A stretch of DNA of 62,674 nucleotides, filler included, from Basidiobolus meristosporus CBS 931.73 (lineage: Eukaryota; Fungi; Basidiobolomycota), in assembly GCA_002104905.1 (NCBI GenBank). It is 3 parts of 3 records of this genome, joined end to end, with 100 filler letters (N's around TTAATTAATTAA, not from the genome) between each part and the next. Parts side by side here need not be neighbours in the genome. Positions count along the whole stretch, not along the records: positions 32,315 to 62,674 come from MCFE01000851.1; 2 more parts are not named here. One strand, given 5' to 3'. Both the position numbers and the translations under genes were made by a program. Below the pieces are notes generated by a model. The model saw nothing but the letters and a program-made list of their open reading frames with translations. It was not told the origin of the DNA and made no database searches. This document shows, one piece after another, positions 32,315 through 62,674 of the stretch; position 1 is the first letter of the stretch, and every line of letters starts with the position of its first letter.

Positions 32315-32816
32315 TACCTGAACTTCCAGTCCCAGACCACAGGACACTCCTAGGAAACCATGCTGACAGCCAACTGACTTTGGAGGCACTACTTGTGAGG
32401 AATACTCAGAATAGGTACCTTTTATTATAATTGATTCTTTTCCAAGTATGTTCTTGTACAGGCAAAGATACTTTTCTGTCTTTGTAACTATCGACCACAG
32501 CTGCATTCTTATCAAGTCCCTGCTGGTGAAGTTTACAACTGTTTTGACTTTGAGAGCTTTAGTATATTGTCATCTCAAAGGATGCTGAGCCCAGCACATA
32601 CTTTTGTCAAGATGCCAACTAAGTTGGGGATTGTAGCTCAATGGTTTTCCCTTGACAAGCTTGTGGTTTTACTCCCCATCACATTGGATTAGAGACAGTA
32701 CTCAAGTATTCCTAGCATGCTTTTGCCAGAGGTTATGGCACCTTGTGAGCACCCCAGAATCATCACACTTGAGAAGTGTTGGACATATCTCTCCCTTGGG
32801 CTTATGCACCACCACA
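32315..32816 (+). repeat. Gypsy-1-family LTR (solo or 3' LTR), truncated by the gap
   Basis: Reverse complement of 19534-19859 plus 24046-24210; ends ACCACA with no PBS after it. Confidence 0.8.
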
Positions 32817-35465: not shown

Positions 35466-35775
35466 TGTCATGATTACATGACAACCATGAATATGCATGC
35501 CAAGTTTCAGCTTCCTAGCTCAATTTCTAAGAGATTCCTTCTGGAACCTTCTACCACCTTCCAGAAAGTTCCTGTCCATTCCAAGCCACTGTTGCACAAT
35601 GGAACATTCCATGGAAGCTTCCCATTGTATTTCTCATAGTTCAGTGCCATATGTGGAAATAGCAGGTCACTTACTAACTATGTTATTAACAGATAGAAAC
35701 TTCAATAGCTCATTCTACGAACCAGCAGGAGGTGGAGATCCAATCTTATATCAGCATCTTTTCTGGTTTTTCGGT

Positions 35776-37787
<2,012 letters not shown>

Positions 37788-37795
37788 TAAATGGC

Positions 37796-37850
37796 AGGCC
37801 CCCCCTGATGGGGCGGGCGGTGGGGGGGGGCTCTTATGGAGCCCCCCCCC
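37796..37850. repeat. Mitochondrial GC-cluster / double-hairpin element
   Basis: Perfect 12-bp stem G9CTC-TTATG-GAGC9 (37822-37850), preceded by a smaller GCCCC..TGAT..GGGGC hairpin. Confidence 0.7.
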
Positions 37851-37860
37851 TTAACGAAGA

Positions 37861-39329
37861 GCTTACACCCACCCAGTCCTCAAGTCTTGTCACCCCTTCA
37901 TTCCTAGTAGGGATATCAGAATCTCAAGCCTCTGATAGAACTTCCAGTACCATCAAGAAATATCTGGAATCCCCAGTTGGGCCCCCTCACAAGTTCCCAA
38001 TCATCCAGAACCTGCATTTGGTAAACAACCTCATCTACCACAAGCAGCAGCTCTATGTCCCAGACCTTGCCACCCAGCTATACATCATTAAGTCTTGGAA
38101 TGATTCAATGGCTGCAGGCCACTTTGGTACTGGCAAAACCTTGAATGCTATCAAAGGAGACTTCTGGTGGCTTAGAATGATAACTCTTATCAAAGAGTAC
38201 ATTCTGACTTGAGATATTTGCAACCGTGCAAAGCCAGCCAGACACCAGCCCTATGGACTTCTCCAGCCCTTGCCTATCCCAGAACACCAATGGAGATATA
38301 TATCTATGGACTCCATTACTGACCTCCCTAAGTCCTGTGGCTTCAATGCAATACTTGTAGTAGCTGACCAACTGACCAAGATGGCCCACTTTATCCCTTG
38401 CAGTAAGAACACTGATGCAAACAAAACTGCTGCATTAGTCCTGAAGAATATTTTCCGCCTTCATGGTATCCCCAGTGATATTGTGTCAGATAGAGGCCCA
38501 CAGTTTGTGTCCAAGTTTTGGAAAAACTTCATGCAATGCCTTGGTGTTCAAGTCAAGCTCTCTACTGCCTTCCATCCACAGTCTGATGACCAGACTGAAA
38601 GAATCAACCAGATTCTAGAACAATACCTCCAGTGCTATATCAATTACCAGCAAGACAATTGGGTTGATCTACTCCCTGTTGCTGAGTTTGCCTACAACAA
38701 CTCAAGCCATAGTGCAACCAGCTTTACACCATTCTATGCAAACTATGGATTCCACCCTCAGTTTGATATCCAGATTCCAACAAACCCAATGAGCCCACAT
38801 GCGGCTGAACATGCCCAAGCAATACCAGGACATCCAGAATACCCTCAAGGAAGAGCTATCCTTAACTCAGGAAAGCTACAAGAAATTTGCCAATCTAAAA
38901 CCACATCCCAGCCCAGATCTTAATGAAGGAGATTCTGTATGGTTGCTCAGAAGAAACATCAGCACCAACTGCCCTTGTGACAAATTGGAATTCAAGAAAC
39001 TTGGTCCCTTCAAGATCAAGAAGAAGCTTAGCCCTATAGTATATCAGCTACAGTTACCAGCATGTATGAAAATCCATGATACTTTCCATGTGTCCCTGCT
39101 GGAGCCATATTGTAGGAACACCTTGCCAAACCGGCAAGAAGCAAAGCCCCAAGCCATCCAGGTAGACCAACATCACAGATTTGATGTTAAACAGATTCTA
39201 GACTCCAAGTATATCCGGTCAAAGCTGTACTACTTAGTAGACTGGATTAGTCATGGTCCAAGTGACCAAAAATGGGAACCAGCTACCCATCTCACTAATT
39301 GTCAAGAACTACTTACCCAGTTCCACTAG
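37861..39329 (+). pseudogene. Chromovirus integrase plus chromodomain, disrupted
   Basis: AAGHFG, WRYISMDSITDLP, IVSDRGPQFVSKFW, HPQSDDQTE, GPF motif; chromodomain FDVKQILDSK..YYLVDW..WEP; stop at ~38210 and frameshift at ~38815. Confidence 0.9.
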
Positions 39330-39940: not shown

Positions 39941-40825
39941 TTACTCTTCATAATGCTCCAGACACATTTCTCTCAGTGGATGTCTTCTTGTATGAACATA
40001 CTGTGCATTGATAAGTATCTTAACTATTTTACCTATTCTGCTGTTTTCTCCTATATATGACTTTCCTCTGTATTTACCTGCCAATATGCTGAATCTCTTC
40101 AGATATCCAAATGTGTGCTCTACCCTTACTCTGAAATGATTAAATATCTCATTGTAGAGCTTCTGCTTCCTGCTAAGCACACCATTCCTTGGCTTCCTAT
40201 AAGCTGTAATACATCCTAATCTCTGACAATCCTCTCCTATATAGGCCAAGTCTGCCATACATTTCTCCCCTCTACTGAATTCAGGATGATTCTCTACCCA
40301 GAGTGCTTTGTCATGCCTACTTCCAGCAAATGGCCCACTAAACCAGATGATGTTACCCTCAATGTCAGACAGTGCTTGAAACTTCACACAGTGTGCCTTG
40401 TACTTGCCAGAATAAAAGTGCCTCTGCCCTCTAGAAGGTCTGTTAATCCTCACTGGGAAGGTATCCAAAATACTCCTGATATGGAACCTGTTGCTGAACA
40501 CTCTGGGATATGGAAGTCTATTGGAGCTTCTGAACCTAGTATTCCAAGCTTGCTCTAAGTCATTCATACCCTCTGCAAGGTGGTTCTCCATTGCTGTCAG
40601 CTGGGAATGAAAGCTTCTAGGACTTTTGTTGCCATGGATGGTGGGATGAAACCTTGTAGGGCAATAGTTCTTGTAATAGCAGAGAAGCTTAACAAGGGAT
40701 CTCCTTGAGTAGATTGGGGTTGATGGTCCACAGTACTTGGAATAGATCTCCTCCAGTGTGTCAAAAGGAAATCAAGTGGTAGTGATGGGATTGATGAGAA
40801 AAGACCATTCTGATGAGTAAGTCAT
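39941..40825 (-). pseudogene. DDE transposase of copy 3 with TGA at codon 18
   Basis: Near-identical to 22978-23862, but TGA at 40774-40772 where copies 1 and 2 have GAA; open from Met79 (40591). Confidence 0.85.
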
Positions 40826-43321: not shown

Positions 43322-46300
43322 CCAATGATATACCTAAGACCTTTTAAAGGCAGTCCAACCTGTTGTGCAACTACTGCAAAAGGAAAGGACACACATCAGA
43401 CTGGTACTTCAAAAAGAGAGAAAGTCAGCTGAAATAGCCTAAACATAGGTATACTGCAACAACCAAAGATAAACTATTCATATCTACACCAAATATGACC
43501 ACAAGCAAGGATTCTCAGACATGGTATATACACTCTGGAACAACTCAATACTTTACAACCAAAAGATTTCTCTACCCAATATTAAAAAATTCCAATTGAG
43601 AAGACTTTTATAGCTGACAATAGAGCACATGATGCAGTGGGACAAGGAAATATCCAAGTAAACCTTAGGAGCAGTGAAGGAAGCCATACTCTTACCTTCA
43701 AAGAACTACTCTATTTACCAGAAATAGCCAAGAACCTACTATCTGTAAGCAAGGCCTCAGCAGAAGGACTCCATTTCAACTTTGACAATTCTGGAAGCAG
43801 GATCACTAATCAAAATGTAGCTCTTATCTCTTCAGGTAGCAGAGATCCAAATCTGTATAAAATGACTTATTTCCATCATATCTAGAAATCAATACAAGTA
43901 ACTCAAATGAAGAAACACTAATACTTTGGCACAGGAGATTTGGACACATCAATTTTGATTATTTACACAAAATGATCAAAGATCAGCCAATTTCTGGAGT
44001 AAAATTTGTTCCCTAGCTGATTTGGAGCACTATGAAGCTTGCATATATGGGAAACATGTCAGACAACCATTCAAGAGCTCCAGTTCAATTAAGACTAGGA
44101 AACAATTTAATCTACTCACTTAGATCTGTGTGGACTTGTGCAAAATTTATCCCTAAGTAGGATGAAGTGTTTAATCACTGTTATTGATGATTATACAAGA
44201 TACATGTGGGTCTATTTCACTGAGAGTAAGAAAGAAGCTCTGTCAAAGCTAAGGGTGCTTAAAGTTGTGGCAGAGAGAGAAACTAGTGAAAAAATCAAGA
44301 AAATACTCTCTGACAATGATGGAGAATATACCTCAGAACACTTCATCCACTTCTGCAAAACTCATGTGACAAGGCAAGAGACTACTGTGCCATACTCCCC
44401 ACAGTAAAACAGAGTAGCAGGACATGCAAGCGGATCAAAAGTTGATAAGGCAAGATCCTGAGTCCATGCTCTTAAGTTATTGTATAATTTTGGGAGGAAT
44501 CAGATGCCACAGCTGTAAACCTGAAAAATAGGGGTTATAGCAGAATACTTTGTGAATCTACTCCATTTGAAACATGGTATGGATACAGACCAAGTGCAGT
44601 ATATTTAAGAATACTTGGATGCATAGCTCATGCAAACATACTTCTCAGAAATCAGTCAAATTTCAAGCCAAAATGTGTAAAAAGAACATTTTTGGCCTAC
44701 TGCAAAGAGATTAAAGCATACAAAGTTTAAAATATTGAGGCAAAGAAGCTGATCAAGTTCAGGAACTTCTTATTTGATGAAAATTCATGATGTTGACAGA
44801 AAATGACATCAAATGATGACAAAAATCTGATCTTAAGTCCACTAGTTGTTAGGATTGAATCAGAGCAAAACAATGAAAGTCTTTTCACTCCAAAGGACCC
44901 TACAACCATGGTTCAGCCTGAAGCAGTGCTCAGGAATATCCCAGAAGTGATTATTCTGGCATCAAATGCCCAAAGATCCAATCAAACAAGAAATAGCTCA
45001 TGCTATTTTATCAGTGGGGGTACAAACTTAGCCTATGCCTATTCAGTCCATATTGATGAGCCCCAGACTGTAAGAGAGGCCCTAAATAGCCCTCAGGCAA
45101 TGTTTTGGAGATCTGCAATGATTTAGGAATATTAGGCCCTTATGGAAAATCAAACTTGGGACTTAGTCAAATTCCAACTCAACCAAAAATCAATTGATTG
45201 CCCAAGGGTCTTTAAGACAAAATACAAGGCCAATAGTACAAGTGAGAGATGCAATGCAAGACTTGTGGCCAAAGGATACTCTCAAACAAAAGGACTTGAT
45301 AATACTGAGACCTTTGCACCAGTAGCTACAATTAATTCCATCAGATTAACATTGGCTATCGCAGCCAAATATTAGTTTTGTATACATCTAATGGATGTAA
45401 ACTGCATTTTTGAATGGACAACTGGATGAGAATGTGTATATGAACCAGCATGATGGGTTTGCTGACCAAGATTACCCCCATTTGGTGTGCAAGCTTAAAA
45501 AGTCTCTATATGGACTCAAACAATCATTAAGAGCCTGGAGTTGCAAAAAAGATTTTTATTTGGAACCTTTGAGTTTGAAATGAAGTAATGCTGACTATAG
45601 TACATACTATAGGCCAGATAGAACAAGCCCAGCTCTATTAGCTCTATATGTGGATGATCTTATTATAGTCACCAATAACCTAGAAATACTGCAGAGACTA
45701 AATCCAGCCTATCCCTTGGGTAAAGATGTCCAATCTAGGAGAACTCATTTATTGCTTAGGGATAAGTTCTCTATACACAGAAGTACCCAGACTATCACCC
45801 TAGCCCAGTCCAAATATATTCAAGATATACTAAAGAAGTACCAAATAGATGAATGTAAACTGGCTGCTACCCCAGTAGAGACAAACCTTAACTTGGTCAA
45901 AACTCAACCAAATCAAGAGAGCTTAGTGCCATCTGAAAGCCCTGACTTATCTTAGCAATCTATGATTGGCAGGCTGATGTATATCATGCTTGGAACACAC
46001 TCAGATATCTCTCATTCAGTGGGAGTTGTTAGCCAGCATGATCAGAACAATGGATCTGATCATATTGCTGCAGTTAGTAGATTTTCAAATACCTAAAAGA
46101 AACTGCTGATATCTGCTTAAGTTACACTTATAAGGATTCAGAACAGGGTTGTGTGGGGTTCTCTGATGCTGATTGGGGACAAACCTAGAAGACATATGAT
46201 CCACCAAAGGAAACACCTTTCTTTACTGTAAAGGAACAATTTCATAGAATTCAAGAAAGCAACCAACCGTAGTACTTTCTACCACAGAGGCAGAGTATAT

Positions 46301-46633
46301 AGCAGCCTGTGAAGCTATAAAAGAAGCAATGTGGATAAGGAAGCTTTTTAAAGATCTAGGCCTATGTCACAAAATGCCTATTACTTTATTTCAAGATAAT
46401 CAAGGATGTATACAATTAGGTAGAAATCCTTCTTTTAATGCTGGAACTAAGCACATAGATATTAGACATCATTTCATATGTGGAGCTTTAGAGAACAACT
46501 TAGTTAACTTAGCTTACTGTCTTACAGATCAAATGATTGCAGACATATTCACCAAACCACTAGCTATAGACAAGTCTGCATATCTTAGGTCAAAATTAGG
46601 ACTAGCCAGTATAAGCACTTTGCTGAGTGGAGG
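43322..46633 (+). mobile_element. Degenerate Ty1/Copia: gag knuckle, protease, integrase, RT, RNase H
   Basis: CNYCKRKGH, WYIHSG, IDDYTRYMWVYF, LSDNDGEYTS, ARLVAKGYSQ, LYVDDL, STTEAEY, TKHIDIRHHF, MIADIFTKPL; many stops. Confidence 0.9.
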
Positions 46634-46882
46634 TGTTGTAAAAATTTGTGATTCCAGCTAAATACTAACCTAACTTAGTCACTTATATCACAGACACTAA
46701 GCACATATATATTAGATATTGTATCATATGTGAAGCTATGGAGAATAACCTTGTAAACCAAGCTTACTCTCCTACAGATTAAATGCTTGTAGATATATTT
46801 ACTGAAGCATTAGTTAGAGATAAATAGATTAACTTTGGTCACAGTTAGAACTAGTCCATATGTGCATATAGCTGAGTAGTAG

Positions 46883-47231
46883 TGTTGTAAAAATTTGTAA
46901 TTCCACTTATATATTCACCTTATGTAGACACTTAGATCATCACCTTCAAATCCTAGAGAATACTAACCAAAATGCTTGTTGGGATTTACTTAAAATATTT
47001 TCATCAAAATATCAGGTACCCAGAGCATGAAAATTCTCAAAGTTGTCCAAACAGCCCCAAACTCTGCACACATGCTCTTAGGACCTTTTTAAACCTATTC
47101 TACTTGCTTATTATGCCAAGACCATGCAAAAGTATAAATACTACTTTTACATTCAATTAATCATTAAGTGAAATACACATAATCTACTTGCTCTCCCAAT
47201 CACTTCCAGCATATCCAAGACTCTTACAACA
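46883..47231 (+). repeat. Copia 3' LTR (349 bp), preceded by a ~249-bp tandem duplicate of RNaseH end/PPT/LTR start
   Basis: TGTTGTAA at 46634 and 46883; TTACAACA end; homologous to 2175-2522. Confidence 0.75.
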
Positions 47232-50200
47232 CAAATGGGGTAGGAGAGCATAACAAGCCAGCTCACAGGAGCTTTGACAGCCACAGAAGATTCAATCAGA
47301 AACCATACCAATGGATATAGATGTAATATGGTAGTACTTAACATAGGTGGAATGCTGGAAGCATATGTTTTGCCTCTACTTTTTGTAGAAAGGGCCCTTG
47401 CTAGATACTGTGCTCCATAGACAGAGAGTTGGCAACTGACCAGCAGCCTTAGTCTCACTGTCAGAGCAACCCCCTTGAAATAGGAAAATGACTTGTACCA
47501 AGACACATATCTTGTATTGAAATTAATATAGAGAAACAGCCCTGATGCATTGCAACTGACAGCAGCTATTGTGTTCTGATGATCCCCCAACTTGGGCAAC
47601 AGCTAACATCATATTAGCCACAGGCACTTTATACATCATTAGCTTGGGACAGCTTGCTCAAAAGCTGGAATTAGCACTTGCATCTTCATATATGATCACA
47701 AAAGTATCAGAAGCCATCAGAGACAAAGAGGCAAGTTTGTACAGCAAGAACTAACATTGCAGGGAGCCCCAAGCAGGAAGCACAAAAATACCATCAAGTG
47801 GAAAGAGTGCCAGAAAGCAACATGCCAATAGCAGTCCTAGCATAACCAGACCTATACAAAGAAACATGTATAACAGGATGCAAGATTCATCCTGTCTAAG
47901 TGGCAGTCTTGGTTCTGATACTGTCAAAGATAAAAGAAACGGTAAATGCTCAGAGGGGCAAGACAATTACTGAAGCTTGCAAATGTGTGCATTGGTGCTA
48001 TGCTTTGCAACCTGGGTATCTGGCGTTTTGGTCAAGTAGAGTATGCAAATCACAACCAGTAGTTTGGCCAGAATACTCCAGGATTTGCTGCCCCATGAGA
48101 AATCTCCAACTTGGAGCTATCTGATAATCTTCAAACATTTTGCTGCTTCTCCATAGGCATTTTTGCAGGCATTCTGCTGGTGCTTTTCCTTCCTATTTGG
48201 CTCCAATACCTGGTGGATATAGTCAGCAGCTGATTGCCAAATTTGGTATGAGCTCCAGTTGATTTTGTGTCCTAAAGTAAGATATATCTGCTTGTCTGCC
48301 AAATGGCTAGTCCAGGATATGCCCAAAGTTGTCAGCTTTGAGAAAGCTGGAACTCAGGTGATATCATGATGGTAGGCTACTAGCCTTTTGTTAGGCTTTT
48401 TCTCTTTGGGTTCACTATGATCTGAGCAACTATTTATGTCTATTTTCAGCTGATATCACAAAATCTGTCAAATATCATGACCAATCTAAGAGAGCTAACC
48501 TACTACTTGGAGAATCAGTTCTCTTTAGACTAAAGTAGCTCCTTGATCACTTCAAGCCAGTCCAAGGATGAATATGATATACTCAATGAGGAATAGCCTG
48601 GTCTTGTTGGTAGATCTAATCCAGATGAAGCATTCATATCATGTATTACAGCCTTAATAATGTGAGCAACAAGGAATTCCTAACTTTATAATGGAGTAGT
48701 TGGAGCATTTTGGTAGTGTTATGCAGACTAGACAGCTTAATATAGCATAAACCTAATAGTGTTTTGACAGCCTTATTGCAAGGTTTTGATGGTAACAATG
48801 ATTCTATTACAGCCTACATTTCTTTAATAGAGCCCAACCTGCCAGTACATTGGATTGCCATTTATGATAGATATTAGAAGTTATGCAGGGCATCATTTGA
48901 TGTGCCCAGCTTTATCATCAAGTTAGACTAAGCCCACATAGAGAGCCATAAACCAGGTAGATTATTCTGTGACTAATTAATATCCTACTCTAAGAAAGCT
49001 TTACAGTGAGTGGTCCTCATGGTTTAACATCATCTGGAGAAACCCTGTATTGCTAGCAATCATCAGGACTCCACCAGTTTGGGGGATTAATAATGGCCTG
49101 CCAAACTATTAGTTGTTGAATGAATATTTAGTTTGCCTGTGACAAAATGGATAACAAAGAATGGTGAGTTGATCAAGTATCAGCTACATTGTTCAATTAC
49201 TATTTAACAATCTTTGATATACTGAATTTGTTATACCTACATAGTAGCCTTGCACTGTTAAGTGGATGACAGTGAGAGCACAATATACTGGTCAACTTTT
49301 ACCTTATCATTGAAATATACCTAATCTTTAGATGGATATTGATATGTGCATGATTTGGCTTAGTATCCCCCAAGAAAAAAATAGATAACAGGCCAGCAGA
49401 TTACCATCATAATATCAGCTGAATTCCTGCCTTCTCAAAACTGGCAACTCTCCAAAACTCAGGTTCTGGCTTTTAGGCAGACTAGCAGACATATTTCCCA
49501 TGAGGAGACAAGGCCAATTATCATTCATACCAAACATGGTGATCAGCTGCTCACTACTCCCACCAAAAATTGCAACTGAAAATCAGAATGGAAAACACCA
49601 GCTGAGCTTCAGGCAAAAATCAGATGATTTTCAAGGGTGAGATTTTTCATAGGGATTGGTTGTATATTGGCTAAAAGCATGGGCTTTTACCCCCCCCCCA
49701 AACACTACCCAGTGCATAGAGCTATACTTGCCTAGTTGCAGATATTTTGGTAATTAGCCTGAGATTCATTGATTATGGGAAGGTGGGGACTTGGCAAACC
49801 TCAAAAATATTGCTGTAGATATTTGTATGTCCACCAGTCATATCACATTGAGGAAGAAATTTTAGGGGCTTCTTTGGCGGCCATAATGGTTGGTGACGCA
49901 ACTGGGGGGCATATCAAAGCCGGGACATCCGTAGCTCAAAAACACATCCTAAAGTAAGCCAGATTATCTTTGAAAAGCTCAAGATAGCCCTGTATATTGA
50001 GCCAACAACTCAACGAAAATACTCTATGACAGTATACCAAGCCATTCAAAGATCTGGATGTCTGGATGCGACCGATGAAATCTCCTACAATCCATGCCCT
50101 AGCGCACGCAGAGGGGAAATATTGACCTGTAGCAACCTACCCTCTGTACATCGGAATCCAATGATGGGATCCCATGATCTCCGCGTGCTGAAACCAGGTA

Positions 50201-50650
50201 AACCGGAACTCAACGAGGCGCCATCGAGAGTTGGAAGAACACCACATCAGAGGAAGTGAGGGATTCATCGGACGTAATCATTACATGGTGGGAGGGTGAT
50301 GGATTTAACTTTTTTCGGCGTGACACCAGAGTGGTCAGTATGGTGGTCATCCATGATGTCAGTCCATTGGTGGCGGACCCGGAACGGGCAGAATCCAGTT
50401 GGCGATGGCCCGAGGCTAAGACGAAAAAAGCCAGGAAGAGAAGCGGTGATGTCGCACGGCATGATCCATTCGGTAGGGAATCTTGATGGTGTGGGTTGAT
50501 GTGGATGTGTACATCGGTGCGTAGGTGATTTGTTACGGGCGCATATATATACAGGAGATCGGTTTGACGCTTGCCGCTTCCTACATTCCCATCCCTGACC
50601 TGACTGGCCCTCAGTCTCTATCTTGTCCCCCCCCCTTACGCCAAACACCC

Positions 50651-52299
50651 ATGCTAAGCCCGGTGAAGAATTGGTGGAAAAGAGTCGACTTGGACGACTT
50701 ACTTGGGTAGGTTTTGGAACGCAGTGGTTTGGCTCGCACGCCACCCTTGGCACTGGTTAACTCCCATTTTCAGTTACGACACCTTCAAGGTGGTCCACGT
50801 TCGGGACCGGCGGTTAGGCTTCACTTTCCACGGTTTTCAGATCGCCATCTTCGCCTACATCATTTACTCGGTCATACACAACCAGCTTTATCTTAAAAAG
50901 GAGTCCCCGGTTCCAGGTATAGCCTCGCTGGACGGAAACCTTACGCCCCTAGCCAACCCCATTCTACCAAGCTAACGTTGTATTGACCGTGTCTAGGGGC
51001 GATCAGGGTGTCGCTGTTAGAGCCCACCGGTGAACTTCAAACCTCCCCATACTGCCAACAAAAACCGTGCGTCTTCTGGGGAGCGAACCAGATATTGTAT
51101 GTGGAAGAGAGTTGAACGAGGAATTCCCAACCGGACTGATCCCCTTCCATTTAGATATGACCCTGGTGATCAGGGGGCCACTTTTCTGACCACCCGTATC
51201 TCCACCAAAGTGTTCCCAGCCAGAGAGGGGTGCGATTTTCAGCTGCCCACCAATGCCGCCTGCAGATACAATCTACAACCATCCACCGTCTCTCCCGAGT
51301 ACTACATCACGGACCTGGATCGATACACCGTACGCGAACTTCCCTCCATCTTTCTAGTCGCCCCTCGGAACTGATCTTTCCCTCCACACAGCTTATGATC
51401 GAGCATTCAGTTCGCGGCACCGCCACGGGCATCTCCATAAGAAACGGGGAGATGTCTGGCCGACTGCTGATCACGAAGGCCAACAACCCGTATTACCAAA
51501 ACGAGACCGAACTTCACTTCAGCCCCCAAACCCGGCCTCCGAGAGTTCCCGGGGACATCATTACCGTTGGGCAGCTCTTACGTGCCTCAGGAGCCGTACT
51601 GGATGGTAGGTGGAGTCCCCATGGTCGCTAATGGTCCCATTACTCACCGATTCGCACTAGCCCCCTCGGACGCACCAGGTGCGGATCAGTCCAAGGGAGA
51701 AACGTACCGTTCCTCCGGGATCGTGCTCAGCGTGGTGATCGAGTACGACAACGACGGGAGCACGAACTTCAAGTACTCCTACTCAGCGAATTACATCAAG
51801 GGAAACGAGTTCAAGGTCGAGGAAACCATATTCAACCCGACCGATGGATCCATCACCGAACTAAACCGACACGGGTAAGCGCGGTCCAGTCAGACCCACC
51901 TTCCACCACCCTGATCCTCACCCAACCTCCTGTAGGATCCGGATCGTCTTTTCGCAGACGGGGAACATCGGGAAGTTCGACTTCATGTCCCTGCTGACGA
52001 ACCTGGTGGCCTCGATAGCGCTCCTCAAGACGGCCACCTTGCTGGTGGAGATATTCATGCTGAAGTTCCTACCGCAGCGGAAGATGTACTACGAGGCGAA
52101 GTACGAGCTTACCGAGGATTTCGACGACCTTCGTAAACGTCGGAATGGAGAGGATATCGATTTGGAGGGTCGGAAAAAACCCACCACCCTTGGACCTGGT
52201 GTCGAGGTCACCCAGCCCTCACCATGCCACACCCACTTCTCGGCGGAGCCCCTGGTCGAGCATAGAGATGACCACGTGGGCCCATCCAAAGCTGTGTGA
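50651..52299 (+). CDS. P2X purinoceptor-like ion channel, Dictyostelium/algal type (7 exons: 50651-50706, 50774-50916, 50997-51096, 51155-51329, 51392-51605, 51661-51874, 51936-52299; 421 aa)
   Basis: N-terminal YDTFKVVHVRDRRLG (YxTxK), TM1, Cys-bearing ectodomain, RHGIRIVFSQTGNIGKFDF, TM2, LPQRKMYYEAKY (YxxxK); all six introns are GT-AG and keep the frame. Confidence 0.9.
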
Positions 52300-52689
52300 A
52301 GGAACGAGGAACCCGAGAAATTTTGACAATCATAATAACCCCACCCCAACCATGTATTCCGCACCTTAGAACCAGAATCCCTCCGAATAAATACCTCTTT
52401 GACCCCTATCTACGTCGTTCTCACCTTTTAGTACACCACCTGGTTCAACCGGATGATCCGGTAAAGATAGCAGTGCTGTTGAGGTGCCAGGAGGATTTCA
52501 TAAGTAGGCAGCGGACCAGGCCCTTTACCCCTCGTCCCCTATCCAATCCTCATACGATACCATGTACATACAATGGGAATATATTAATTGGAATAGCATG
52601 TTTATTGGTATACATCTTTGCGATCCATTGGAATGATTCAATCGGAGGCAGTACCAACAAATTACAATCAACCTATCCGGTGGCATGAC

Positions 52690-54219
52690 TCACTGCGCCC
52701 TCTTCAAGCAGATGTTCACATCGGCCTTGATGAGGCCAAGCACCTTGGCGCGTGCGACAATGTCATCGCACGACCACTTATCGGCGTCTCCCTTGGACCA
52801 GTCACTGGCTCCCTTCACCCCAAGGCAGACGTTCGCGCGGATTTTGAGTCCGAGGATGTTCAGGCGAGCCACGATGTCGTTGCACTCGTCGGAGTCGCTG
52901 TCCTCGTCACCACCTAGTCTTCCACCGCGGAGGGTGTTCTTGAGGCAAATGTTGACGTCGGCCTTGATGAGACCAAGCACCTTGGCGCGTGCAACAATGT
53001 CATCGCACGACCACTTATCGGCATCTCCCTTGGACCAGTCACTGGCTCCCTTCACCCCAAGGCAGACATTGGCATCCACTTTGAGACCAAGCAGGCGGAG
53101 GCGAACCACGATGTCATCGCACTCGTTGTGTTCTCCATCGCCGCCACTTGGCCGTCCACCGCCGAGGACGTTCTTCAAGCAGATGTTGACGTCGGCCTTG
53201 ATGAGACCAAGCACCTTGGCGCGTGCAACAATGTCATCGCACGACCACTTGTCGGCATCTCCCTTGGACCAGCCACTGGCTCCCTTGATTCCAAGGCAGA
53301 CGTTGGCGTCCACTTTGAGTCCAAGCAGGCGAAGACGAGCCACAATATCTTCACATTCATCGTAGTCTCCGTCACTGCCGCTGCTTGGCTGCACACCACC
53401 AAGGACATTCTTCAGGCAGACATTGACATCAGCCTTGATCAGGCCAAGCACCTTGGCGCGTGCAACAATGTCATCGCATGACCAGTTGTCGGCATCTCCC
53501 TTGGACCAGCCCCTGGCTCCCTTGATTCCGAGGCAGACATTGGCGTCCACCTTGAGCCCAAGTAGGCGCAGGCGGGCCACGATATCGTCACACTCATTGT
53601 AGTCGCCATTATCGCCACCGTGACCATTCTCTGGAAGGATTGACACCAAGCCATCGTTGCTACCTAGTATCGGACCAAGACACACCTTGGCGTCAACCTT
53701 GATCCCAAGAAGGCGACCAACGCGGACAAGATCCTCGCATGACCACTTGGAGTAATCGTCGTCATCATCGTGCCCGCTGCTCAGCACCCCCTTCTCTATC
53801 TTCCTTCCGAGGCACACGTTCACGTTCGCCCGGACCTTCAGCAACTTGAGTCTGGCCACGATGCCGCGACATCTGCGCTCACTCTCCTCCTCGTCGTAAT
53901 CATCGCCACGTTTCTTCAATCCTCCAATACACACATTCGCGTCGACCTTCACCCCGAGGGCCCGAACTTTGGCCACCAAGGCATCACACAACAGATCAGC
54001 TGGATCGTACAGATCTGCCTCGTCGCTACCCCCATCTCCACCGGGACGACCCTCGCACAGGTCGAGCCCGAGGTTCGCGTGGTAACGGGTATTCAGATGG
54101 GATAACAAATCCTGGCAGTAATTCAATCCACCTGGGGGGACGTATCCTCTCTCCACGACCAAGCTGGATGCAAGAAGCGCACTGGACAGAACTAACAAAA
54201 GGCAGTTGGCGGAGAACAT
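52690..54219 (-). CDS. Secreted Cys-module repeat protein A (509 aa, 12 C-x18/19-C modules); family not recognised
   Basis: Signal peptide MFSANCLLLVLSSALLASS; four ~79-aa double-module repeats; intronless. Confidence 0.85.
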   Translation of the reverse strand: MFSANCLLLVLSSALLASSLVVERGYVPPGGLNYCQDLLSHLNTRYHANLGLDLCEGRPGGDGGSDEADLYDPADLLCDALVAKVRALGVKVDANVCIGGLKKRGDDYDEEESERRCRGIVARLKLLKVRANVNVCLGRKIEKGVLSSGHDDDDDYSKWSCEDLVRVGRLLGIKVDAKVCLGPILGSNDGLVSILPENGHGGDNGDYNECDDIVARLRLLGLKVDANVCLGIKGARGWSKGDADNWSCDDIVARAKVLGLIKADVNVCLKNVLGGVQPSSGSDGDYDECEDIVARLRLLGLKVDANVCLGIKGASGWSKGDADKWSCDDIVARAKVLGLIKADVNICLKNVLGGGRPSGGDGEHNECDDIVVRLRLLGLKVDANVCLGVKGASDWSKGDADKWSCDDIVARAKVLGLIKADVNICLKNTLRGGRLGGDEDSDSDECNDIVARLNILGLKIRANVCLGVKGASDWSKGDADKWSCDDIVARAKVLGLIKADVNICLKRAQ

Positions 54220-56600
54220 TTTGCACAAGTCTATCGTCTAAGGCAGAGGCGGAGGCGGAGGAGGGGGAGGAGGATACGCTTGGTTGTTGTGTGAGGAATG
54301 AACCACCAGATGGCCGCGTTTTATACCGGACCCATCAGGCAACACCGCCCCTTAGCGCCGCGTCCAACATGACTCTAGATAATACCCGATTGGAATGCGG
54401 AGAAGCACCGATATGGTCTAGTAGAAATGAAATAATCGCCGTTCATTATGTAGCGTACTTACAATGGAAAGGCTTCTCATTCATCACTAAAGTGACTTGC
54501 ATCATATAGATGGGATTCGTTCCAACTCCCCGAGGTCCACACTAATGCACTGCGCTAGGGCACATCGGTACAAATGGAGGGATGCATACTCCACCGGTAA
54601 TAGGGGAAAATCAAGATCCCCATTATCCAGACTATTGCCATCTCCCTCATGATCATGGCGGCGGTGTACAGCAGTTGGAAAGCTTCGTGAGATTCTTCAT
54701 CATGAACCCAACGTGACCCCGTCCCTAATTCACCATATGCATCACCTCGCATCCCACCACCAACCGATGCGCTTCATTTCTAACCAGCTGGATTCCCCGC
54801 CGACTGGCACGGTTTGGGAGCTTGGGGACGGTCACACCAGGGGGATGCGTCAAGTGGCATTATCGGGGCTATGAATTCCCTCTGCATAAGTGTACAGCGG
54901 GCAATAAGCATTGAGCCGAGTCTGGTCTAATGCAAGATCCATTGGAAGCCCACATTTGGCTTCGTCCGGTGATGATCAGGGAGGTGCGTGGGTGTGTCGG
55001 CCATACCGGAAAGCCAATGGCCCATCTGAAACCCCGATGGTGGTTAGGATAATGGTTGGGTGATAATGGTAAATTAAAGCAAGGGGATACGCCACATTGG
55101 ACAATTAGTCTCTCTTTTCTGCTAGACCATATCGGTGCTTCTCCGCATTCCAATCGGGTATTATCTAGAGTCATGTTGGACGCGGCGCTAAGGGGCGGTG
55201 TTGCCTGATGGGTCCGGTATAAAACGCGGCCATCTGGTGGTTCATTCCTCACACAACAACCAAGCGTATCCTCCTCCCCCTCCTCCGCCTCCGCCTCTGC
55301 CTTAGACGATAGACTTGTGCAAAATGTTCTCCGCCAACTGCCTTTTGTTAGTTCTGTCCAGTGCGCTTCTTGCATCCAGCTTGGTCGTGGAGAGAGGATA
55401 CGTCCCCCCAGGTGGATTGAATTACTGCCAGGATTTGTTATCCCATCTGAATACCCGTTACCACGCGAACCTCGGGCTCGACCTGTGCGAGGGTCGTCCC
55501 GGTGGAGATGGGGGTAGCGACGAGGCAGATCTGTACGATCCAGCTGATCTGTTGTGTGATGCCTTGGTGGCCAAAGTTCGGGCCCTCGGGGTGAAGGTCG
55601 ACGCGAATGTGTGTATTGGAGGATTGAAGAAACGTGGTGATGATTACGACGAGGAGGAGAGTGAGCGCAGATGTCGCGGCATCGTGGCCAGACTCAAGTT
55701 GCTGAAGGTCCGGGCGAACGCGAACGTATGCCTCGGGAAGAAGTTGGAAAAGGGCGTGCTGAGTAACGGGCACGACGATGACGACGATTATTCCAAGTGG
55801 TCATGCGAGGATCTTGTCCGCGTTGGTCGCCTTCTTGGGATCAAGGTTGACGCCAAGGTGTGTCTTGGTCCGATACTAGGTAGCAACGATGGCTTGGTGT
55901 CAATCCTTCCAGAGAATGGTCACGGTGGCGATAATGGTGACTACAATGAGTGTGACGATATCGTGGCCCGCCTGCGCCTACTTGGGCTCAAGGTGGACGC
56001 CAATGTCTGCCTCGGAATCAAGGGAGCCAGGGGCTGGTCCAAGGGAGATGCCGACAAGTGGTCATGCGATGACATTGTTGCACGCGCCAAGGTGCTTGGC
56101 CTGATCAAGGCCGATGTCAACGTCTGCCTGAAGAATGTCCTCGGTGGTGTGCAGCCAAGCAGCGGCAGTGACGGAGACTACGATGAATGTGAAGATATTG
56201 TGGCTCGTCTTCGCCTGCTTGGACTCAAAGTGGACGCCAACGTCTGCCTTGGAATCAAGGGAGCCAGTGGCTGGTCCAAGGGAGATGCCGACAAGTGGTC
56301 GTGCGATGACATTGTTGCACGCGCCAAGGTGCTTGGTCTCATCAAGGCCGACGTCAACATCTGCTTGAAGAACGTCCTCGGCGGTGGACGGCCAAGTGGC
56401 AGCGATGGAGAACACAACGAGTGCGATGACATCGTGGTTCGTCTCCGCCTGCTTGGTCTCAAAGTGGATGCCAATGTCTGCCTTGGGGTGAAGGGAGCCA
56501 GTGACTGGTCCAAGGGAGATGCTGACAAGTGGTCGTGCGATGACATTGTTGCACGCGCCAAGGTGCTTGGTCTCATCAAGGCCGACGTCAACATCTGCTT
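52700..56600. repeat. Large inverted repeat (arms ~52700-54421 and ~55121-56600, spacer ~700 bp)
   Basis: Promoter, 5' UTR and coding sequence are mirror images; identical ORFs appear on both strands in the ORF track. Confidence 0.9.
55217..55223 (+). promoter_or_regulatory. Putative TATA box of secreted protein B (mirror copy at ~54320 for protein A)
   Basis: GTATAAAA about 105 nt upstream of ATG 55324. Confidence 0.45.
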
Positions 56601-57072
56601 GAAGAATGTCATCGGTGGTGGCCGGCCAGTTGGTGGTAATGATGGAGAGCACAGCGAGTGCGATGACATTATAGTACGCCTTCGACTTCTTGGACTGAAG
56701 GTAGATGCCAACGTCTGTCTCGGAATCAAGGGAGCCGGAGATTGGAGCAAGTCACGTATCGAGAACTCCAAATGTGAGGACATCGTCTCACATGCCAAAG
56801 TGCTCGGGATCATCAAGGCTGATGTAAACGTGTGCCTAAACAACGCCAGCCGCCCAGACCAAATTGCCGAACACTTCAACGAATGTGATACCATCGTGGC
56901 CAGACTTCGCGTACTCGGTATCCCTGTCGCCGCCAACATCTGCCTCAACATCAAGGTCGACGGCAAGCTCACCAAAGAGGAGATCGACAACATGAAGTGC
57001 GAGGAGATCACCGCTCACGCCAAAGCCCTTCACATCCTGAAGGCGGATGTCGAGGTGTGCCTTGTAAAATAG
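55324..57072 (+). CDS. Secreted Cys-module repeat protein B (582 aa, 14 modules)
   Basis: Same signal peptide as A; 28 mature Cys in 14 regularly spaced pairs; one KKR dibasic site. Confidence 0.85.
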   Translation: MFSANCLLLVLSSALLASSLVVERGYVPPGGLNYCQDLLSHLNTRYHANLGLDLCEGRPGGDGGSDEADLYDPADLLCDALVAKVRALGVKVDANVCIGGLKKRGDDYDEEESERRCRGIVARLKLLKVRANANVCLGKKLEKGVLSNGHDDDDDYSKWSCEDLVRVGRLLGIKVDAKVCLGPILGSNDGLVSILPENGHGGDNGDYNECDDIVARLRLLGLKVDANVCLGIKGARGWSKGDADKWSCDDIVARAKVLGLIKADVNVCLKNVLGGVQPSSGSDGDYDECEDIVARLRLLGLKVDANVCLGIKGASGWSKGDADKWSCDDIVARAKVLGLIKADVNICLKNVLGGGRPSGSDGEHNECDDIVVRLRLLGLKVDANVCLGVKGASDWSKGDADKWSCDDIVARAKVLGLIKADVNICLKNVIGGGRPVGGNDGEHSECDDIIVRLRLLGLKVDANVCLGIKGAGDWSKSRIENSKCEDIVSHAKVLGIIKADVNVCLNNASRPDQIAEHFNECDTIVARLRVLGIPVAANICLNIKVDGKLTKEEIDNMKCEEITAHAKALHILKADVEVCLVK

Positions 57073-57639
57073 ATGGGCCACCCAGCGCCCAGTCGATATC
57101 CTCCCTGGAAGGAAGCATATTCAGGGAGGGAGCAGGAATGTTTGCGATATAGCGAAACAATTTTACCACCTTCTTGTGATTTTGATTTTACTCGAATAGA
57201 ACTTTCAAACTCATAAGATACCATACCAATAAAGGGCGAAGTTATCGTACACGAAGTGCCGCACCATCTCTTCATCCTAACCATACTCCCAAGGTGGCTT
57301 TTGTTATGTGGAATCTTGATAACCATATACGTTGAGGCTATGGAGGGCTTAGGTTCCAATGTGATGGCCATTCCTGTCTGTGCAGTGCTACAGGTATCAT
57401 CGATGGGGACTGTGAAACGAGAGAGCCCTGATGTGTCTTTCATGAAAGTGGTTTATTTTTGGTACTTCCTACGAATCCATGAAAAGAGATGGGGGAAAAT
57501 CCGAGGGAGAGTATGCATGATGAAGATGATGTGAAGTGAATGTCATGAAGCGGAGCAATGTTTGAAGCGGAATTTACAGTGGATATGTTTCATTAAGCGT
57601 TGGAAAATCAGTACCTAAACATTCTCCTGGGTTTGATGC

Positions 57640-60128
57640 TTAGTTGTTAGCTTCAGCCATCTTGTTCAATGCAGAACCGGCCTTGAACCACTCGATTTGG
57701 TTCTCGTTGAAGGTGTGGTTGACGGGGATCTCGATCTTCTCGCCGGACTCGCGGGTGACGCGAAGGGTCAATGGCTTGCCGGGGGTGAAGGTGGTGAGAC
57801 CGACGATGGACACCTTGTCGGAGGGCTTGATCTTCTCGTAGTCAGCGGGGTCAGCGAAGGTCAAGGGAAGAACACCTTGCTTCTTCAAGTTGGTCTCGTG
57901 AATACGAGCGAAGGACTTGGTAATGACGGCGATACCACCCAAGTGACGAACTTCGAGGGCGGCGTGCTCGCGGGAAGAACCTTCACCGTAGTTCTCGTCA
58001 CCGACGACGACCCAGCTGATGCCCTTGGCCTTGTAGTCTCTGGCAACGGCGGGAACGGCTCCGAATTCACCGGTCAAGACGTTCTTGATGTTGTTGGCTT
58101 CTCCGTTCTCGGAGTTAATGGCACCGATCAACATGTTGTTAGAGATGTTGTCCAAGTGACCACGGTACTTGAGCCAGGGACCGGCCATAGAGATGTGATC
58201 AGTGGTGCACTTGCCCTTGACCTTGATCAAGACGGGAAGATCTTCGGCGTCCTGGCCGTTCCACTTGGCGAAAGGCTCAAGGATTTGAAGTCTGTTACTC
58301 TCGGGGGATACCTCAACCTTGACGGTGGAGCGGTCCTCAGGGGGGGCTTGGTAGGTGTTCTCACCAGCGTCGTAACCGCGAGGGGGAAGTTCGGCACCGT
58401 GGGGAGGAGTGAACTTGAACTTCTTGCCGTCGGCGCCAGTAAGCTCATCAGTGATGGGGTTGAAGCAAAGGTCACCGGCGAAGGACATGGCAGTGACGAG
58501 CTCAGGGGAAGCAACGAAAGCGTGGGTGGCAGGGTTACCGTCGTTACGTCCGGTGAAGTTTCTGTTGTAGGAGGTGATGATGGAGTTCTTGTCACCCTTC
58601 TTGATGTCTTGACGATCCCATTGACCGATGCAAGGACCGCAGGCGTTGGCGAGAACGACACCACCGGCCTTGTCGAAGACCTCCATTTGTCCGTCACGCT
58701 CGATGGTGGCACGGATTTGCTCGGAACCAGGGGTGATGGTGAACTTGGACTTGACTTGGAGTCCGTGGTCAAGAGCCTCTTGGGCAAGGGAGGCGGAGCG
58801 GGACATATCTTCATAGGAAGAGTTGGTGCAGGAGCCGATGAGACCGACCTTCAATTCACTGGGCCAGTTGTTCTTCTTGACGGTTTCGGCGAACTTGCTC
58901 AAGGGAGTGGCAAGATCGGGAGTGAAGGGTCCGTTGATGTGTGGCTCCAATTCGGAAAGGTTGATCTCGATGACGTGATCGTATTTGGCACCCTCATCAG
59001 CACGGAGGTTGTGGGCGAACTCCTCAGAAGACTTGGCGATGTGAGGACGGCTGGTGGCACGGAGGTAGTCACCCATACGCTTGTTGAAGGGGAACACGGA
59101 GGTAGTGGCACCGATTTCGGCACCCATGTTACAGATGGTAGCCATACCAGTGCAAGACAAGCTCTCAACACCAGGGCCGAAGTATTCGACAATAGCACCA
59201 GTTCCTCCCTTGACGGTCAAGATACCAGCAACCTTCAAGATGACATCCTTGGCGGAGGTCCAACCGCTGATTTGGCCGGTGAGCTTAACACCAATGACCT
59301 TGGGGCACTTGAGTTCCCATGGGATGTCGGCCATGACGTCAACAGCATCGGCACCACCAACACCGATAGCGCACATACCCAAACCACCAGCGTTGGGGGT
59401 ATGGGAGTCAGTACCGATCATGAGACCACCGGGGAAAGCATAGTTCTCGAGGATGATTTGATGGATAATGCCGGATCCTGGCTTCCAGAAACCAAGACCG
59501 TACTTGGCGGTGGCGCTGGCCAAGAAGTCGTAGACTTCCTTGTTGATGTCCTTGGCTCTGGCCAAATCCTTGGGGCCACCCAACTGAGCCTCGATCAAGT
59601 GATCGCAGTGAACGGTGGAGGGGACGGCAACTGTGGGAAGACCAGCGGAGATGAATTGAAGAAGAGCCATTTGGGCGGTGGCATCTTGGCAAGCAACACG
59701 ATCAGGTCTGAGCTTGAGGTAGGAGGAACCACGCTCGATGTCTTGGTTCTTGGCATCGTCCAAGTGACCGTAGATAATCTTCTCAGCAAGAGTAAGGGGA
59801 TGGTTCAAACTGTAGAGCAACCGTTAGTACGAATGTAGCAGGGATCCAGTTCAACCAGGGTACTTACCGATCTCTGATGATGGCCAAGTTGTCCTCAATT
59901 CTTTGGTAGTTGATGTACTTGTCCTTCTCCAAGTTGGAGATGGACACCTTTTGAGGAGCAACACCACCGGTAGCGGTAGCTAAGCCTCTGGCAGAGACTG
60001 CCTTGCGTACAATAGGAGAGAAGTTCTACAGGAGAAGAATCGGCGGTGGTTAGACTCGGGGGGTATGCAACAGAGAGGAGGCATTGAATTGAACATACTC
60101 TAGAAGCACGACTGAAAGTAGACATCAT
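57640..60128 (-). CDS. ACO1: Mitochondrial aconitase (exons 60128-60099, 60025-59868, 59809-57640; 785 aa)
   Basis: Presequence [28 protein letters not shown]; [53 protein letters not shown]. Confidence 0.97.
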
Positions 60129-61519
60129 CTTCGTTGGATGATGAAAGAGAAGCAGACAGGGTTGTCGGAAATGAGTGTGGGGTGTGGCTATTTGTAGGTT
60201 TTTCGAGATGCTTTCGTTCCACCAATCAGCAGATCGTTGGAAAAATTTTAAATCCTCATTATCTATGGATAAGACCGATTGATACCCGGGTAAAATAGCA
60301 TCAACTCAACCATCGTCACGCGGCACGGTAACGTCGCTCTAAAGAGCAGATAAACCTGATTGTCAACATACGTACTACAATACCCAATGGCATATTTCTG
60401 GTGTGAATGCACAGGGATTCTGCCGTCCGTGGCTACAGGATTGTCATTCCACTGAGCCAGTTGTGATTAACTTGTGCGCCCCGAAGGTCAGCTGCAGCAG
60501 GTATATTATTCACCTTCAAATTCGGGTCATTTAGCGAGGTGGTGTCTGGCAAGTGAATGCACGTGCTGACGAAAACGAAATTTCGATTACTTAATAGCCA
60601 GTGTTGACACACACCTCAAAACGGAAGGGGTTAAGAAAAATTAGCACTTAACCCCTTCCTATTCGGATGCTGGAGCAGCGAGCCAATCAACAGCCTCCAA
60701 ACCGGATGCCCATTTCCATCAAAATGCTCTGTTTCTCCGCGCCTTAATAGGTTAAATATATATTGTATCCAGAGTCACAGGATGGTAATACCTAACGAAT
60801 CCTAGTGGCTTTGAGCATTCCCCTCCCCCAAAACCACGCCACCTTCCCCCAGAAAATTCTGCTTGCATTATTTTCCACTCACCCACCCATGCTTGCTTTC
60901 ATGCCCGCTAGGCCAGCGCCGAAAGTCTGGTAGAGAGTAGTGAAGTGTGTCGGATGTGACGTACCGTTATTTGATGATTTCCATTTGGCACTGTGAGAAT
61001 GGATGCTCGGATAAATTCGTCTGACACTTATTTCATCGGTGCCCCATAAATTTCACTACATTACGTCGGGATATGGTCTCGGGCTTCTAATTTGACAGCT
61101 CATTTATTGAGGCCCAACTGTCAAATCTGTCACCGTAATCGGCTTTCCATTTGGTTTGACCACATTATTCGCTTTCCGAGACTCGGCTTTCGTTCTTTTC
61201 TATGCGCCGATTCTACGTCGACCGATGTTGGGCTTTCCTCTGCTCCTTAGTGGTTGGTACCACTAGGATACTCTGTTGAGCCCTCTTTCGGTAGTGTAAC
61301 ATGTAGTTGCTTTATTGGATACTGTTGAGCCCGAATTCGCTTTCTCTGTCCTTTTGTTCGGCTAAATCAATTGCGCTTAGCCTCCATTTATTTTTTACCA
61401 ACCGCGACCGTAGGAAGATTCATGGAATTACGTATTTCTGTATCATTGTGCGTATCTTTATTCAGGGTGTTTATCTTTATCCAAGGTATGCTAGCTATAC
61501 ACCGGTAACTCGGGCATCT

Positions 61520-62352
61520 TTAAGTGAATACAACTGGTTTGTCCATGCATGCCACACGCTTGATTGGTACCTGATGCTCCTCAAGTTTGCTTGCCACTTT
61601 GTTGCACAATTCTGGATCACCACGACCAGTTGCTTTCGAAGCGTCGAGCGAGTCGCTCTCTCCGACGCATCTCCAGGTCTGTGGCGAGAATCCTTCCGCA
61701 GTTAGTACCTGCTTGACAAGGTCGCACTTATTGATGGTCTTGGTGACCTTGTCTGTAGGATCAGCACGCTTTCTGAATTCTCTTCTCGCTTTTGTCCGCT
61801 TCTCGCAGACATTTCGATCGATTCGCACCCCCAGAATGTTCAATTGCCGAATTAGTCCATTGCAGTCATATTGTGATAGGTCATCTTCTGGGGCGTGAGT
61901 GCCACCTAGCAAAGGCTTGACCGGGTCGAGGGCGACACTGACACACACACTTACCAAGGGCTTGTGCGTGTATTGCTGAAGTCTTTGGATGATGTCTTCA
62001 CACCGGTCCTTGTACTTGCCCTTCACCTCGTCAAGAGTGCCGACATCATTCTTGTCTACCGAACAGACATGTTCATCAACAAGGACATCTCGCTCTCGAA
62101 GACCCTTCAGAAGTTCGTGGCAACCAAGACTGCTTGGGTCGGGTAATTCAGTCTCCCCAGCACTGCTGTCAGGAATGTTGAGGCATTTCTCCAGGGGAAG
62201 CTCGGCTTTGTACCGAGTGTTGAGGTGAGACACCAGATCCTGGCAGTAGTTCAACCCGACTGGGGGAGTGTACCCTCTCTCCACTACACGTAGCCCGAGG
62301 CTAGAAGAGCACTGGACAATACGAACAACAGGTTGTTGATTGAAAGCGTCAT
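61520..62352 (-). pseudogene. Divergent third member C of the secreted Cys-module family (6 modules), with a 1-nt frameshift after the signal peptide
   Basis: ATG 62352 gives MTLSINNLLFVLSSALLASGYV then TAG (62286-84); the shifted frame continues VVERGYTPPVGLNYCQDLVSHLNTRY, matching A and B. Confidence 0.8.
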
Positions 62353-62674
62353 TGGCAGCACTCGACACAATGAAGAGAAGGATACTGAAGGCACGAATGA
62401 TGTTGACGATGCTGTGGCTGGCTATTTATACAGTCCATCGGTCTGTTTATGCGGAAGACTTATCTCAGTCACCACATGGAAGTTGGTAACAATGGGAGCT
62501 TATCGAAATCACCGAAGGATCAATGAAGGCATGACGTCATCGGCAACTCCTTTTTTCCAGTTGTAATGTAGGTACGAAAGATGCCTCGATGGCCCCTGGC
62601 TTATTCTAGCTTTAGCTGGCCATAGAGTCAATGCATTGCTAGGACTGACTTCAGGAGGTTCTAATATTATCCTC

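Follow-up and report, generated by a model that had tools for sequence, protein, structure and literature searches.

The fungus Basidiobolus meristosporus CBS 931.73 encodes, on scaffold MCFE01000851.1, a set of predicted secreted proteins that are assembled from tandem modules, each bounded by two cysteine residues that are separated by 18 or 19 residues (C-x18/19-C). Here we report an analysis of three such genes (genes A, B and C) in a 62,674-nucleotide (nt) stretch of genomic DNA (hereafter referred to as the window, to which all coordinates refer), of which positions 32315–62674 are scaffold MCFE01000851.1 (30,360 bp). The modules pair into a unit with four invariant cysteines, and sequence searches indicate that the proteins constitute a family that is new to curated libraries and confined to the genus Basidiobolus. 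We tentatively favour the view that these proteins are non-enzymatic, extracellular structural components of the cell wall, the spore surface or an adhesive matrix.

Basidiobolus, a phylogenetically isolated fungus, is associated with the gut of amphibians and reptiles and occasionally causes disease in humans; its surface proteins are almost wholly uncharacterized. Orphan families of secreted repeat proteins are common among fungi, and a lineage-specific, secreted, cysteine-stabilized tandem-repeat protein is of a familiar type in these organisms. Genes A, B and C are not unannotated, as GenBank has them as hypothetical proteins, and our literature searches found no paper on the Basidiobolus four-cysteine repeat family.

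Tandem modules form a four-cysteine unit

Gene A (52690–54219, minus strand) and gene B (55324–57072, plus strand) encode secreted repeat proteins of 509 and 582 residues, respectively, with the stop codons included in these intervals. Their start codons were taken at the ATGs at 54219 and 55324, within open reading frames (ORFs) that span 52690–54228 (minus) and 55315–57072 (plus). Both genes are intact and intron-less, and lie head to head. The N termini of their products (MFSANCLLLVLSSALLASS/LVVERGYVPPGGLNYCQDLLSHLNTRY) are signal-peptide-like, and the secretion proposed in the first-pass annotation of this DNA is borne out by such sequence features, with the signal peptides of A, B and C called by eye. 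The gene B product is identical to database entry P0001, and the gene A product has the same length as P0046, a deposited model from the sister scaffold described below.

In both proteins, the signal peptide is followed by a head module, three x18 modules and a series of x18/x19 units, of which A has four and B has five, the final one diverged. Cysteine-spacing lists, in which the head counts as one module, yielded 12, 14 and 6 C-x18/19-C modules for A, B and C, in agreement with the numbers first given, and the mature proteins contain 24, 28 and 12 cysteine residues, respectively. All cysteine gaps in the three proteins measure 16–30 residues, and no two cysteines are adjacent. Gene C also keeps the cysteine spacing, as had been noted for this paralogue, in each of its six modules. 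The common head of A, B and C, VVERGY[VT]PP.GLNYCQDL[LV]SHLNTRY, was confirmed as described, but it does not precede the modules as an additional element, being already one of those counted. The head is itself a C-x19-C element that can be aligned to module 1 of other members of the family, and is thus a diverged module rather than a separate domain.

Tandem Repeats Finder (TRF) detected arrays with a period of 237 nt, equivalent to 79 residues or one x18 plus one x19 module, in gene A (52701–53604, minus strand; 3.8 copies, score 1147, 84% matches) and gene B (55943–56736, plus strand; 3.4 copies, score 1076, 85% matches), matching the earlier description of a ~79-residue, four-cysteine unit of alternating modules. 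These arrays make up the 3′ parts of the two genes. Given the regular cysteine spacing and the match levels of the 237-nt arrays, the repeat pattern in A and B cannot be a product of chance. An alignment of 24 two-module units, drawn from all architectures of the family, contains exactly four invariant cysteines (C6, C25, C44 and C64, present in 24 of 24 units) and one near-invariant leucine. Because the four cysteines are invariant across the alignment, we take the four-cysteine module pair to be the repeating structural entity. This building block comprises ~60–79 residues, with two C-x18/19-C modules and a connecting loop of ~18 residues, and the family is defined by the two modules, the four invariant cysteines and the motif C-x2-[ILV]-x3-[LVA]-x2-L-G-x-x-[VI]-x-A-x-[VI]-C, all of which are present. 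Across 22 A/B-type units from B. meristosporus and Basidiobolus ranarum, which also share the conserved motifs EYNEC and GWSK, the fraction of the commonest residue per column is 0.85–0.87 in the modules and 0.62–0.67 in the linkers. The suggestion that the scaffold is conserved while the surfaces diversify therefore fits in part: the modules are the more conserved portion, and the divergence resides in the connectors.

Predicted structure of the unit

The net charge of the modules is zero (two Asp, three Arg/Lys and one Asp) and their helical hydrophobic moments are only moderate (0.31–0.37), and the L-K-V-D-A-N-V-C-L alternation has a high β-type hydrophobic moment (0.65–0.80). Since zero net charge and moderate moments are also found in the buried elements of small domains, the amphipathicity gives no particular reason to expect membrane activity. 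AlphaFold2 modelled full-length B from a 10-sequence alignment with a mean predicted local distance difference test (pLDDT) score of 39.5, and a single unit from the 24-sequence alignment with a pLDDT of 59.3 and a predicted template modelling (pTM) score of 0.43. Neither model is of usable quality. In both, the first half of every module is helical at low confidence (E-C-D-D-I-V-A-R-L-R-L is an example), whereas neither predicts the strand that had been proposed for the second half, so that of the earlier helix–strand description only the helix appears in the models. The AlphaFold and Foldseek check suggested for the unit gave no fold match: Foldseek against the PDB had a best E value of 2.4, and a wide VIA-align search of 48,161 chains had a best Z score of 2.8, neither of which is meaningful. 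Such empty fold searches are to be expected from a weak unit model. The ESM Atlas contained no usable model or neighbour for B or for the minimal two-module protein P0034.

On these grounds, each module may begin with a short, N-capped helix and continue as an extended segment, with a disulfide between the two cysteines of the module closing the structure. Within-module pairing would fit P0006, which has an odd number of modules (seven), each with its own two cysteines. Two modules would then come together through their hydrophobic faces to form one small domain, and 6–7 such domains would be strung along Gly/Asp-rich linkers. An arrangement of this kind would repeat a small, stable and self-associating domain many times, the number of units setting the length.

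The family is found in Basidiobolus

A profile built from ten family members, searched against 1.84 billion representative proteins, returned 26 matches at E ≤ 1e-3 (E values from 2e-245 to 8e-4). The 25 matches that were traced are all Basidiobolus proteins, which upholds the lineage specificity proposed at the outset, and the 26th, P0037, belongs to the Pro-rich subgroup of the family. Word-based searches with B, C and P0006 retrieved proteins of B. meristosporus and B. ranarum only, apart from low-complexity Gly/Asn matches; P0011–P0018 were rejected as relatives, as they are Gly/Asn-rich low-complexity matches to P0006. Being genus-specific, with no detectable relatives outside Basidiobolus among ~15 billion proteins and no predictable fold, this multi-copy secreted family is a candidate for a new small disulfide-stabilized domain.

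The members fall into several architectures. Besides the regular A/B type and the C type, in which the same head precedes diverged modules, there are proteins whose module pairs are split by Gly/Asn-rich linkers (P0006, P0009, P0010, P0023 and P0024), by Pro-rich linkers (P0022, P0027, P0030, P0033 and P0036) or by Ser/Asp-rich linkers (P0035, P0038 and P0039). P0021 has about ten modules joined by short linkers, and minimal two-module proteins of 107–131 residues are represented by P0034 with four close paralogues, P0028, P0029 and P0031. Low-complexity spacers occur in the relatives P0006, P0021–P0023, P0027 and P0035. The family varies in module number, as had been anticipated, with 10 modules in P0004 and 16 in P0002, both from B. 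ranarum, alongside the 12 of A and the 14 of B. Members also occur in local gene clusters, on two B. meristosporus scaffolds (188 kb and 205 kb), the latter carrying P0006, P0023 and P0040, and five near-identical genes for 107-residue two-module proteins have the consecutive accessions ORY01642–ORY01647.

Searches against known families

Pfam scans of ~17 family proteins at E ≤ 10 gave unrelated sub-threshold matches only (for example, Peptidase_M99_m with 21 bits against a cut-off of 27.5) and no match to Hydrophobin, Hydrophobin_2, CFEM, saposin or chaplin models, and searches of PDB sequences with a single protein and with the unit profile had a best E value of 0.13. The NCBIfam search (E ≤ 1) flagged the SpxO anti-adapter (NF041458 / PF28059), a 54-residue bacterial profile, with a summed score of 38.2 bits against a cut-off of 107. 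The similarity involves profile positions 3–19 only, a 17-residue stretch that recurs along the repeats, with no single occurrence significant; the faint PF28059 flag is explained by the addition of these short similarities, and we judged the match spurious. The Pfam, NCBIfam and PDB sequence searches were thus all without a significant match, and the view that the proteins match no characterized family holds.

UniRef names P0022 'Hydrophobin' and P0003 'Xylose isomerase-like TIM barrel'. Neither name has hidden Markov model (HMM) support, and we therefore take both as automatic misnaming. The label on P0022 would speak for a family of divergent hydrophobin homologues, and the LLG...VC stretch of the module may bear a loose likeness to a class I hydrophobin motif. 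The hydrophobin models PF01185 and PF06766 had no match at E ≤ 10 in A, B, C, P0002, P0006, P0019–P0023, P0027, P0030, P0034, P0035 or P0039, and hence not even in P0022 itself. Nor do the proteins have the eight-cysteine pattern C-CC-C-C-CC-C, given the gap lengths above and the lack of CC doublets, and the profile search of the 1.84 billion representatives returned no Dikarya proteins. Hydrophobins are essentially a feature of Dikarya. We regard homology to them as very improbable.

B. meristosporus CBS 931.73 is reported (PMC7329392) as the fungal strain richest in Kex2-processed repeat proteins (KEPs), with 43 of them, and for this reason we tested the idea that the family proteins are KEPs, cut at dibasic sites into disulfide-looped signalling or antimicrobial peptides. 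A signal peptide (by eye, MFSANCLLLVLSSALLASS) and tandem repeats are present, A, B, P0002 and P0005 have a KR site after the head pair, and RR occurs in some inter-unit linkers of B. ranarum. The dibasic site that a KEP would have between successive repeats is, however, missing: A has three dibasic sites and B has two (at residues 103 and 115, and in A only at 506), none of them between the 79-residue units, and P0004 has no such sites. Moreover, the zero net charge of the modules is not typical of cationic antimicrobial peptides, and the family accessions searched for are absent from the available supplementary text of PMC7329392. Processing of this type is thus unlikely.

Locus and homogenization of genes A and B

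Positions 46046–62674 of the window share 97.6–99.4% DNA identity with part of a 122-kb sister scaffold, MCFE01000227.1 (L001), the homology being seen from position 46046, where the compared L001 sequence starts. The gene order on the sister scaffold is a P2X receptor (plus), a 509-residue gene (minus), a 582-residue gene (plus), aconitase (minus) and two 276-residue C-type genes (minus), and the repeat genes are deposited there as the hypothetical proteins ORX93684, ORX93685, ORX93687 and ORX93688. The same gene order and this level of identity indicate that MCFE01000851.1 is a haplotig or a recent segmental duplicate.

On MCFE01000851.1, the A–B pair likewise sits between the P2X-receptor gene and the gene for mitochondrial aconitase, of which an exon encoding 726 residues spans 57640–59820 (minus strand; Pfam Aconitase, E = 2e-148). 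B. ranarum has a matching arrangement of P2X (plus), a 418-residue gene (minus) and a 653-residue gene (plus), and the head-to-head pair thus predates the split between B. meristosporus and B. ranarum. The P2X-type ATP-gated channel gene (~50600–52300, plus strand; L001 5343–6991) is the conserved left neighbour of A in both species, and the occurrence of such a receptor in a fungus is of some note in its own right.

Genes A and B are embedded in an inverted repeat, the arms of which (52792–54430 and 55113–56751) are 1639 nt long and 95% complementary, and include ~210 nt upstream of each ATG. The divergent intergenic region between the two genes (54220–55323), of which the ~210 nt beside each ATG fall in this repeat, presumably carries both promoters. 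Over their first 200 residues, A and B are 98% identical, as compared with ~51% for the B. ranarum pair, which suggests gene conversion between the inverted paralogues, or their re-duplication, within B. meristosporus. The two genes are homogenized over the 5′ 1.3 kb and diverge past codon 428, where their 3′ ends differ by the gain or loss of whole units, with B having one extra unit. The last, diverged unit of B (56869–57069) shares 67% identity with its terminal counterpart in P0004, which is the B. ranarum gene in the position of A, not of B. Either this terminal unit was common to both ancestral genes or the ends were exchanged.

Gene C is frameshifted on this scaffold

The ORF of gene C spans 61520–62368 (minus strand, 282 codons). 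Its body (61520–62287, minus), from VVERGY to the stop codon, encodes the head and five more C-x18-C modules and has no upstream in-frame ATG. The signal peptide is encoded by an exon fragment in a different frame (62284–62352, minus), which runs from an ATG at 62352 through MTLSINNLLFVLSSALLASGYV to a TAG at 62286–62284. Relative to the two intact copies that the sister scaffold carries, MCFE01000851.1 has two extra bases near 62288–62291, and this 2-bp insertion puts the signal peptide and the body out of frame. Thus, of the three genes first described, A and B are intact, whereas C is frameshifted on this scaffold. The deposited model of C, P0047 (260 residues), places an intron across the break, and bridging it in this way deprives the model of VVERGYTPPVGLNYCQ, including the first cysteine of the head. 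The C body is 95% identical to P0007, and P0048 is also close, both being encoded on the sister scaffold. The break may be genuine, as a frameshift allele, or may stem from an indel error in a minor scaffold, and the clustering of small indels in gene C would fit the latter. One extra base relative to both sister copies is also present at position 62353, directly upstream of the ATG.

Purifying selection and codon use

The copies of gene A on the two B. meristosporus scaffolds differ at 14 codons synonymously and at 4 non-synonymously, and gene B differs from its sister copy P0045 by 14 and 7, respectively. A comparison of A with B over codons 1–428 revealed 18 synonymous and 6 non-synonymous changes. 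Genes A and B are under purifying selection. Their codon use (GC content at third codon positions (GC3) of 0.64–0.66; effective number of codons (Nc) of 39–41) is near that of aconitase (0.68 and 32.5) and unlike that of the transposon ORFs of MCFE01000851.1 (GC3 of 0.43–0.44). Exact-sequence look-ups of the genes returned genome assemblies only and no transcriptome contigs.

These data bear on whether the genes might be an artefact of annotation, or a repeat expansion that is decaying or has no function, as the frameshift in C and the transposon-rich left half of the scaffold might suggest. The ORFs of A and B are intact on both scaffolds, the synonymous changes exceed the non-synonymous ones, synteny of the locus extends to B. 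ranarum, module sequences are conserved between species and the codon bias is host-like, and we consequently give this explanation hardly any credence.

Other features of the scaffold

The MCFE01000851.1 portion of the window is divided by a sharp step in GC content at ~50300, with a low-GC half (0.34–0.49) up to ~50.3 kb followed by a gene-dense, GC-richer half (0.47–0.56). The low-GC half contains transposon fragments (33113–33529, 37808–39329 and 39941–40591), comprising a piece of a tnp2 transposase, a Ty3/gypsy-type integrase with SH3 and chromodomain, and a Harbinger-type DDE_Tnp_4 transposase. Transposon association, which would have undercut a functional role for the repeat genes, was not found, as the fragments lie more than 10 kb from these genes in a separate low-GC block. 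In addition, mitochondrial-type cox1 fragments that flank a LAGLIDADG endonuclease ORF occupy 35497–37790 (Pfam COX1, E = 2e-83 and 4e-07). Their presence in a nuclear-looking scaffold means either that mitochondrial DNA has inserted into the nuclear genome or that the assembly is chimeric here.

Proposed function

Low-complexity spacers combined with a small repeated unit are the usual build of wall and matrix proteins. The structural role that we favour, tentatively and on sequence grounds, is suggested by the relatives, which join the four-cysteine unit to Pro-, Gly/Asn- and Ser/Asp-rich spacers, and by the lack of any enzymatic or known binding domain. Three points weigh against it. Both structure models are of low confidence (pLDDT 39.5 and 59.3), which leaves the fold, the disulfides and the association of modules in pairs as conjecture. 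Neither a C-terminal GPI-type hydrophobic tail nor a PIR-type repeat is visible in the sequences, which thus give no sign of covalent wall attachment; any attachment to the wall would accordingly be non-covalent or through disulfides. Furthermore, low-complexity linkers are found in secreted effectors and adhesins as well.

Indeed, the proteins may instead be multivalent secreted binding proteins or effectors, the units of which would bind a lipid, a sterol, a glycan, or a host or microbial surface. Such proteins would have their place of action in the gut of amphibians or reptiles or on the cuticle of insects, or would be directed at competitors, and would not form part of the wall of the fungus itself. 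The family has the usual effector-like features, in that its members are secreted, cysteine-stabilized and lineage-specific, and occur in tandem gene clusters with variable copy number, and its modules stay fixed while the linkers diverge. Host-interacting surfaces often diversify, however, whereas the module sequence is almost invariant across species and the ratio of non-synonymous to synonymous substitution rates (dN/dS) is low; in addition, the Pfam scans revealed no recognizable binding domain. We consider an effector role possible but doubtful.

A further reading, which we consider rather unlikely, is that the four-cysteine unit represents a new surface-active or adhesive fold, the counterpart of hydrophobins, repellents and chaplins in Basidiobolus, which lies outside the Dikarya, the group with classical hydrophobins. 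If so, the proteins might form a coat on aerial conidiophores and ballistic conidia, or a capilliconidial adhesive, with the number of units tuning the layer. The remaining probability is assigned to functions outside the readings given here. The family is a candidate for lineage-specific wall, spore or adhesion biology and possibly a diagnostic antigen, and is at present a well-delimited lead.

Comparison with known systems

KEPs such as the Ustilago maydis repellent Rep1 resemble the family in being secreted fungal proteins in which a signal peptide is followed by tandem repeats, whereas the repeats of the family are longer (79 residues) and cysteine-stapled, with no regularly spaced dibasic sites between units. 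CFEM and other fungal cysteine-rich extracellular domains are likewise secreted and cysteine-stabilized, and occur in wall and surface proteins with low-complexity spacers, but CFEM has eight cysteines in ~60 residues and a defined HMM, to which the family has no match. Streptomyces chaplins, which coat aerial hyphae, have a ~40-residue amphipathic domain with two cysteines ~17–18 residues apart, and the long chaplins have two such domains in tandem. The tandem two-cysteine amphipathic module is thus shared with the chaplins, at most as an analogy, since chaplins are bacterial, the family has no chaplin match in Pfam (E ≤ 10) or NCBIfam (E ≤ 1) and bacterial proteins are absent from the matches of the profile search. 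A hydrophobin consists of one domain of ~100 residues with eight cysteines, including two CC doublets, whereas the family has four-cysteine units with a cysteine every 18–20 residues, arranged in arrays of 3–8 units, and no match to the hydrophobin HMMs. Both are nevertheless secreted, disulfide-stabilized fungal proteins built on a small scale with amphipathic elements, and the coat role proposed for the Basidiobolus family would be analogous to that of the hydrophobins.

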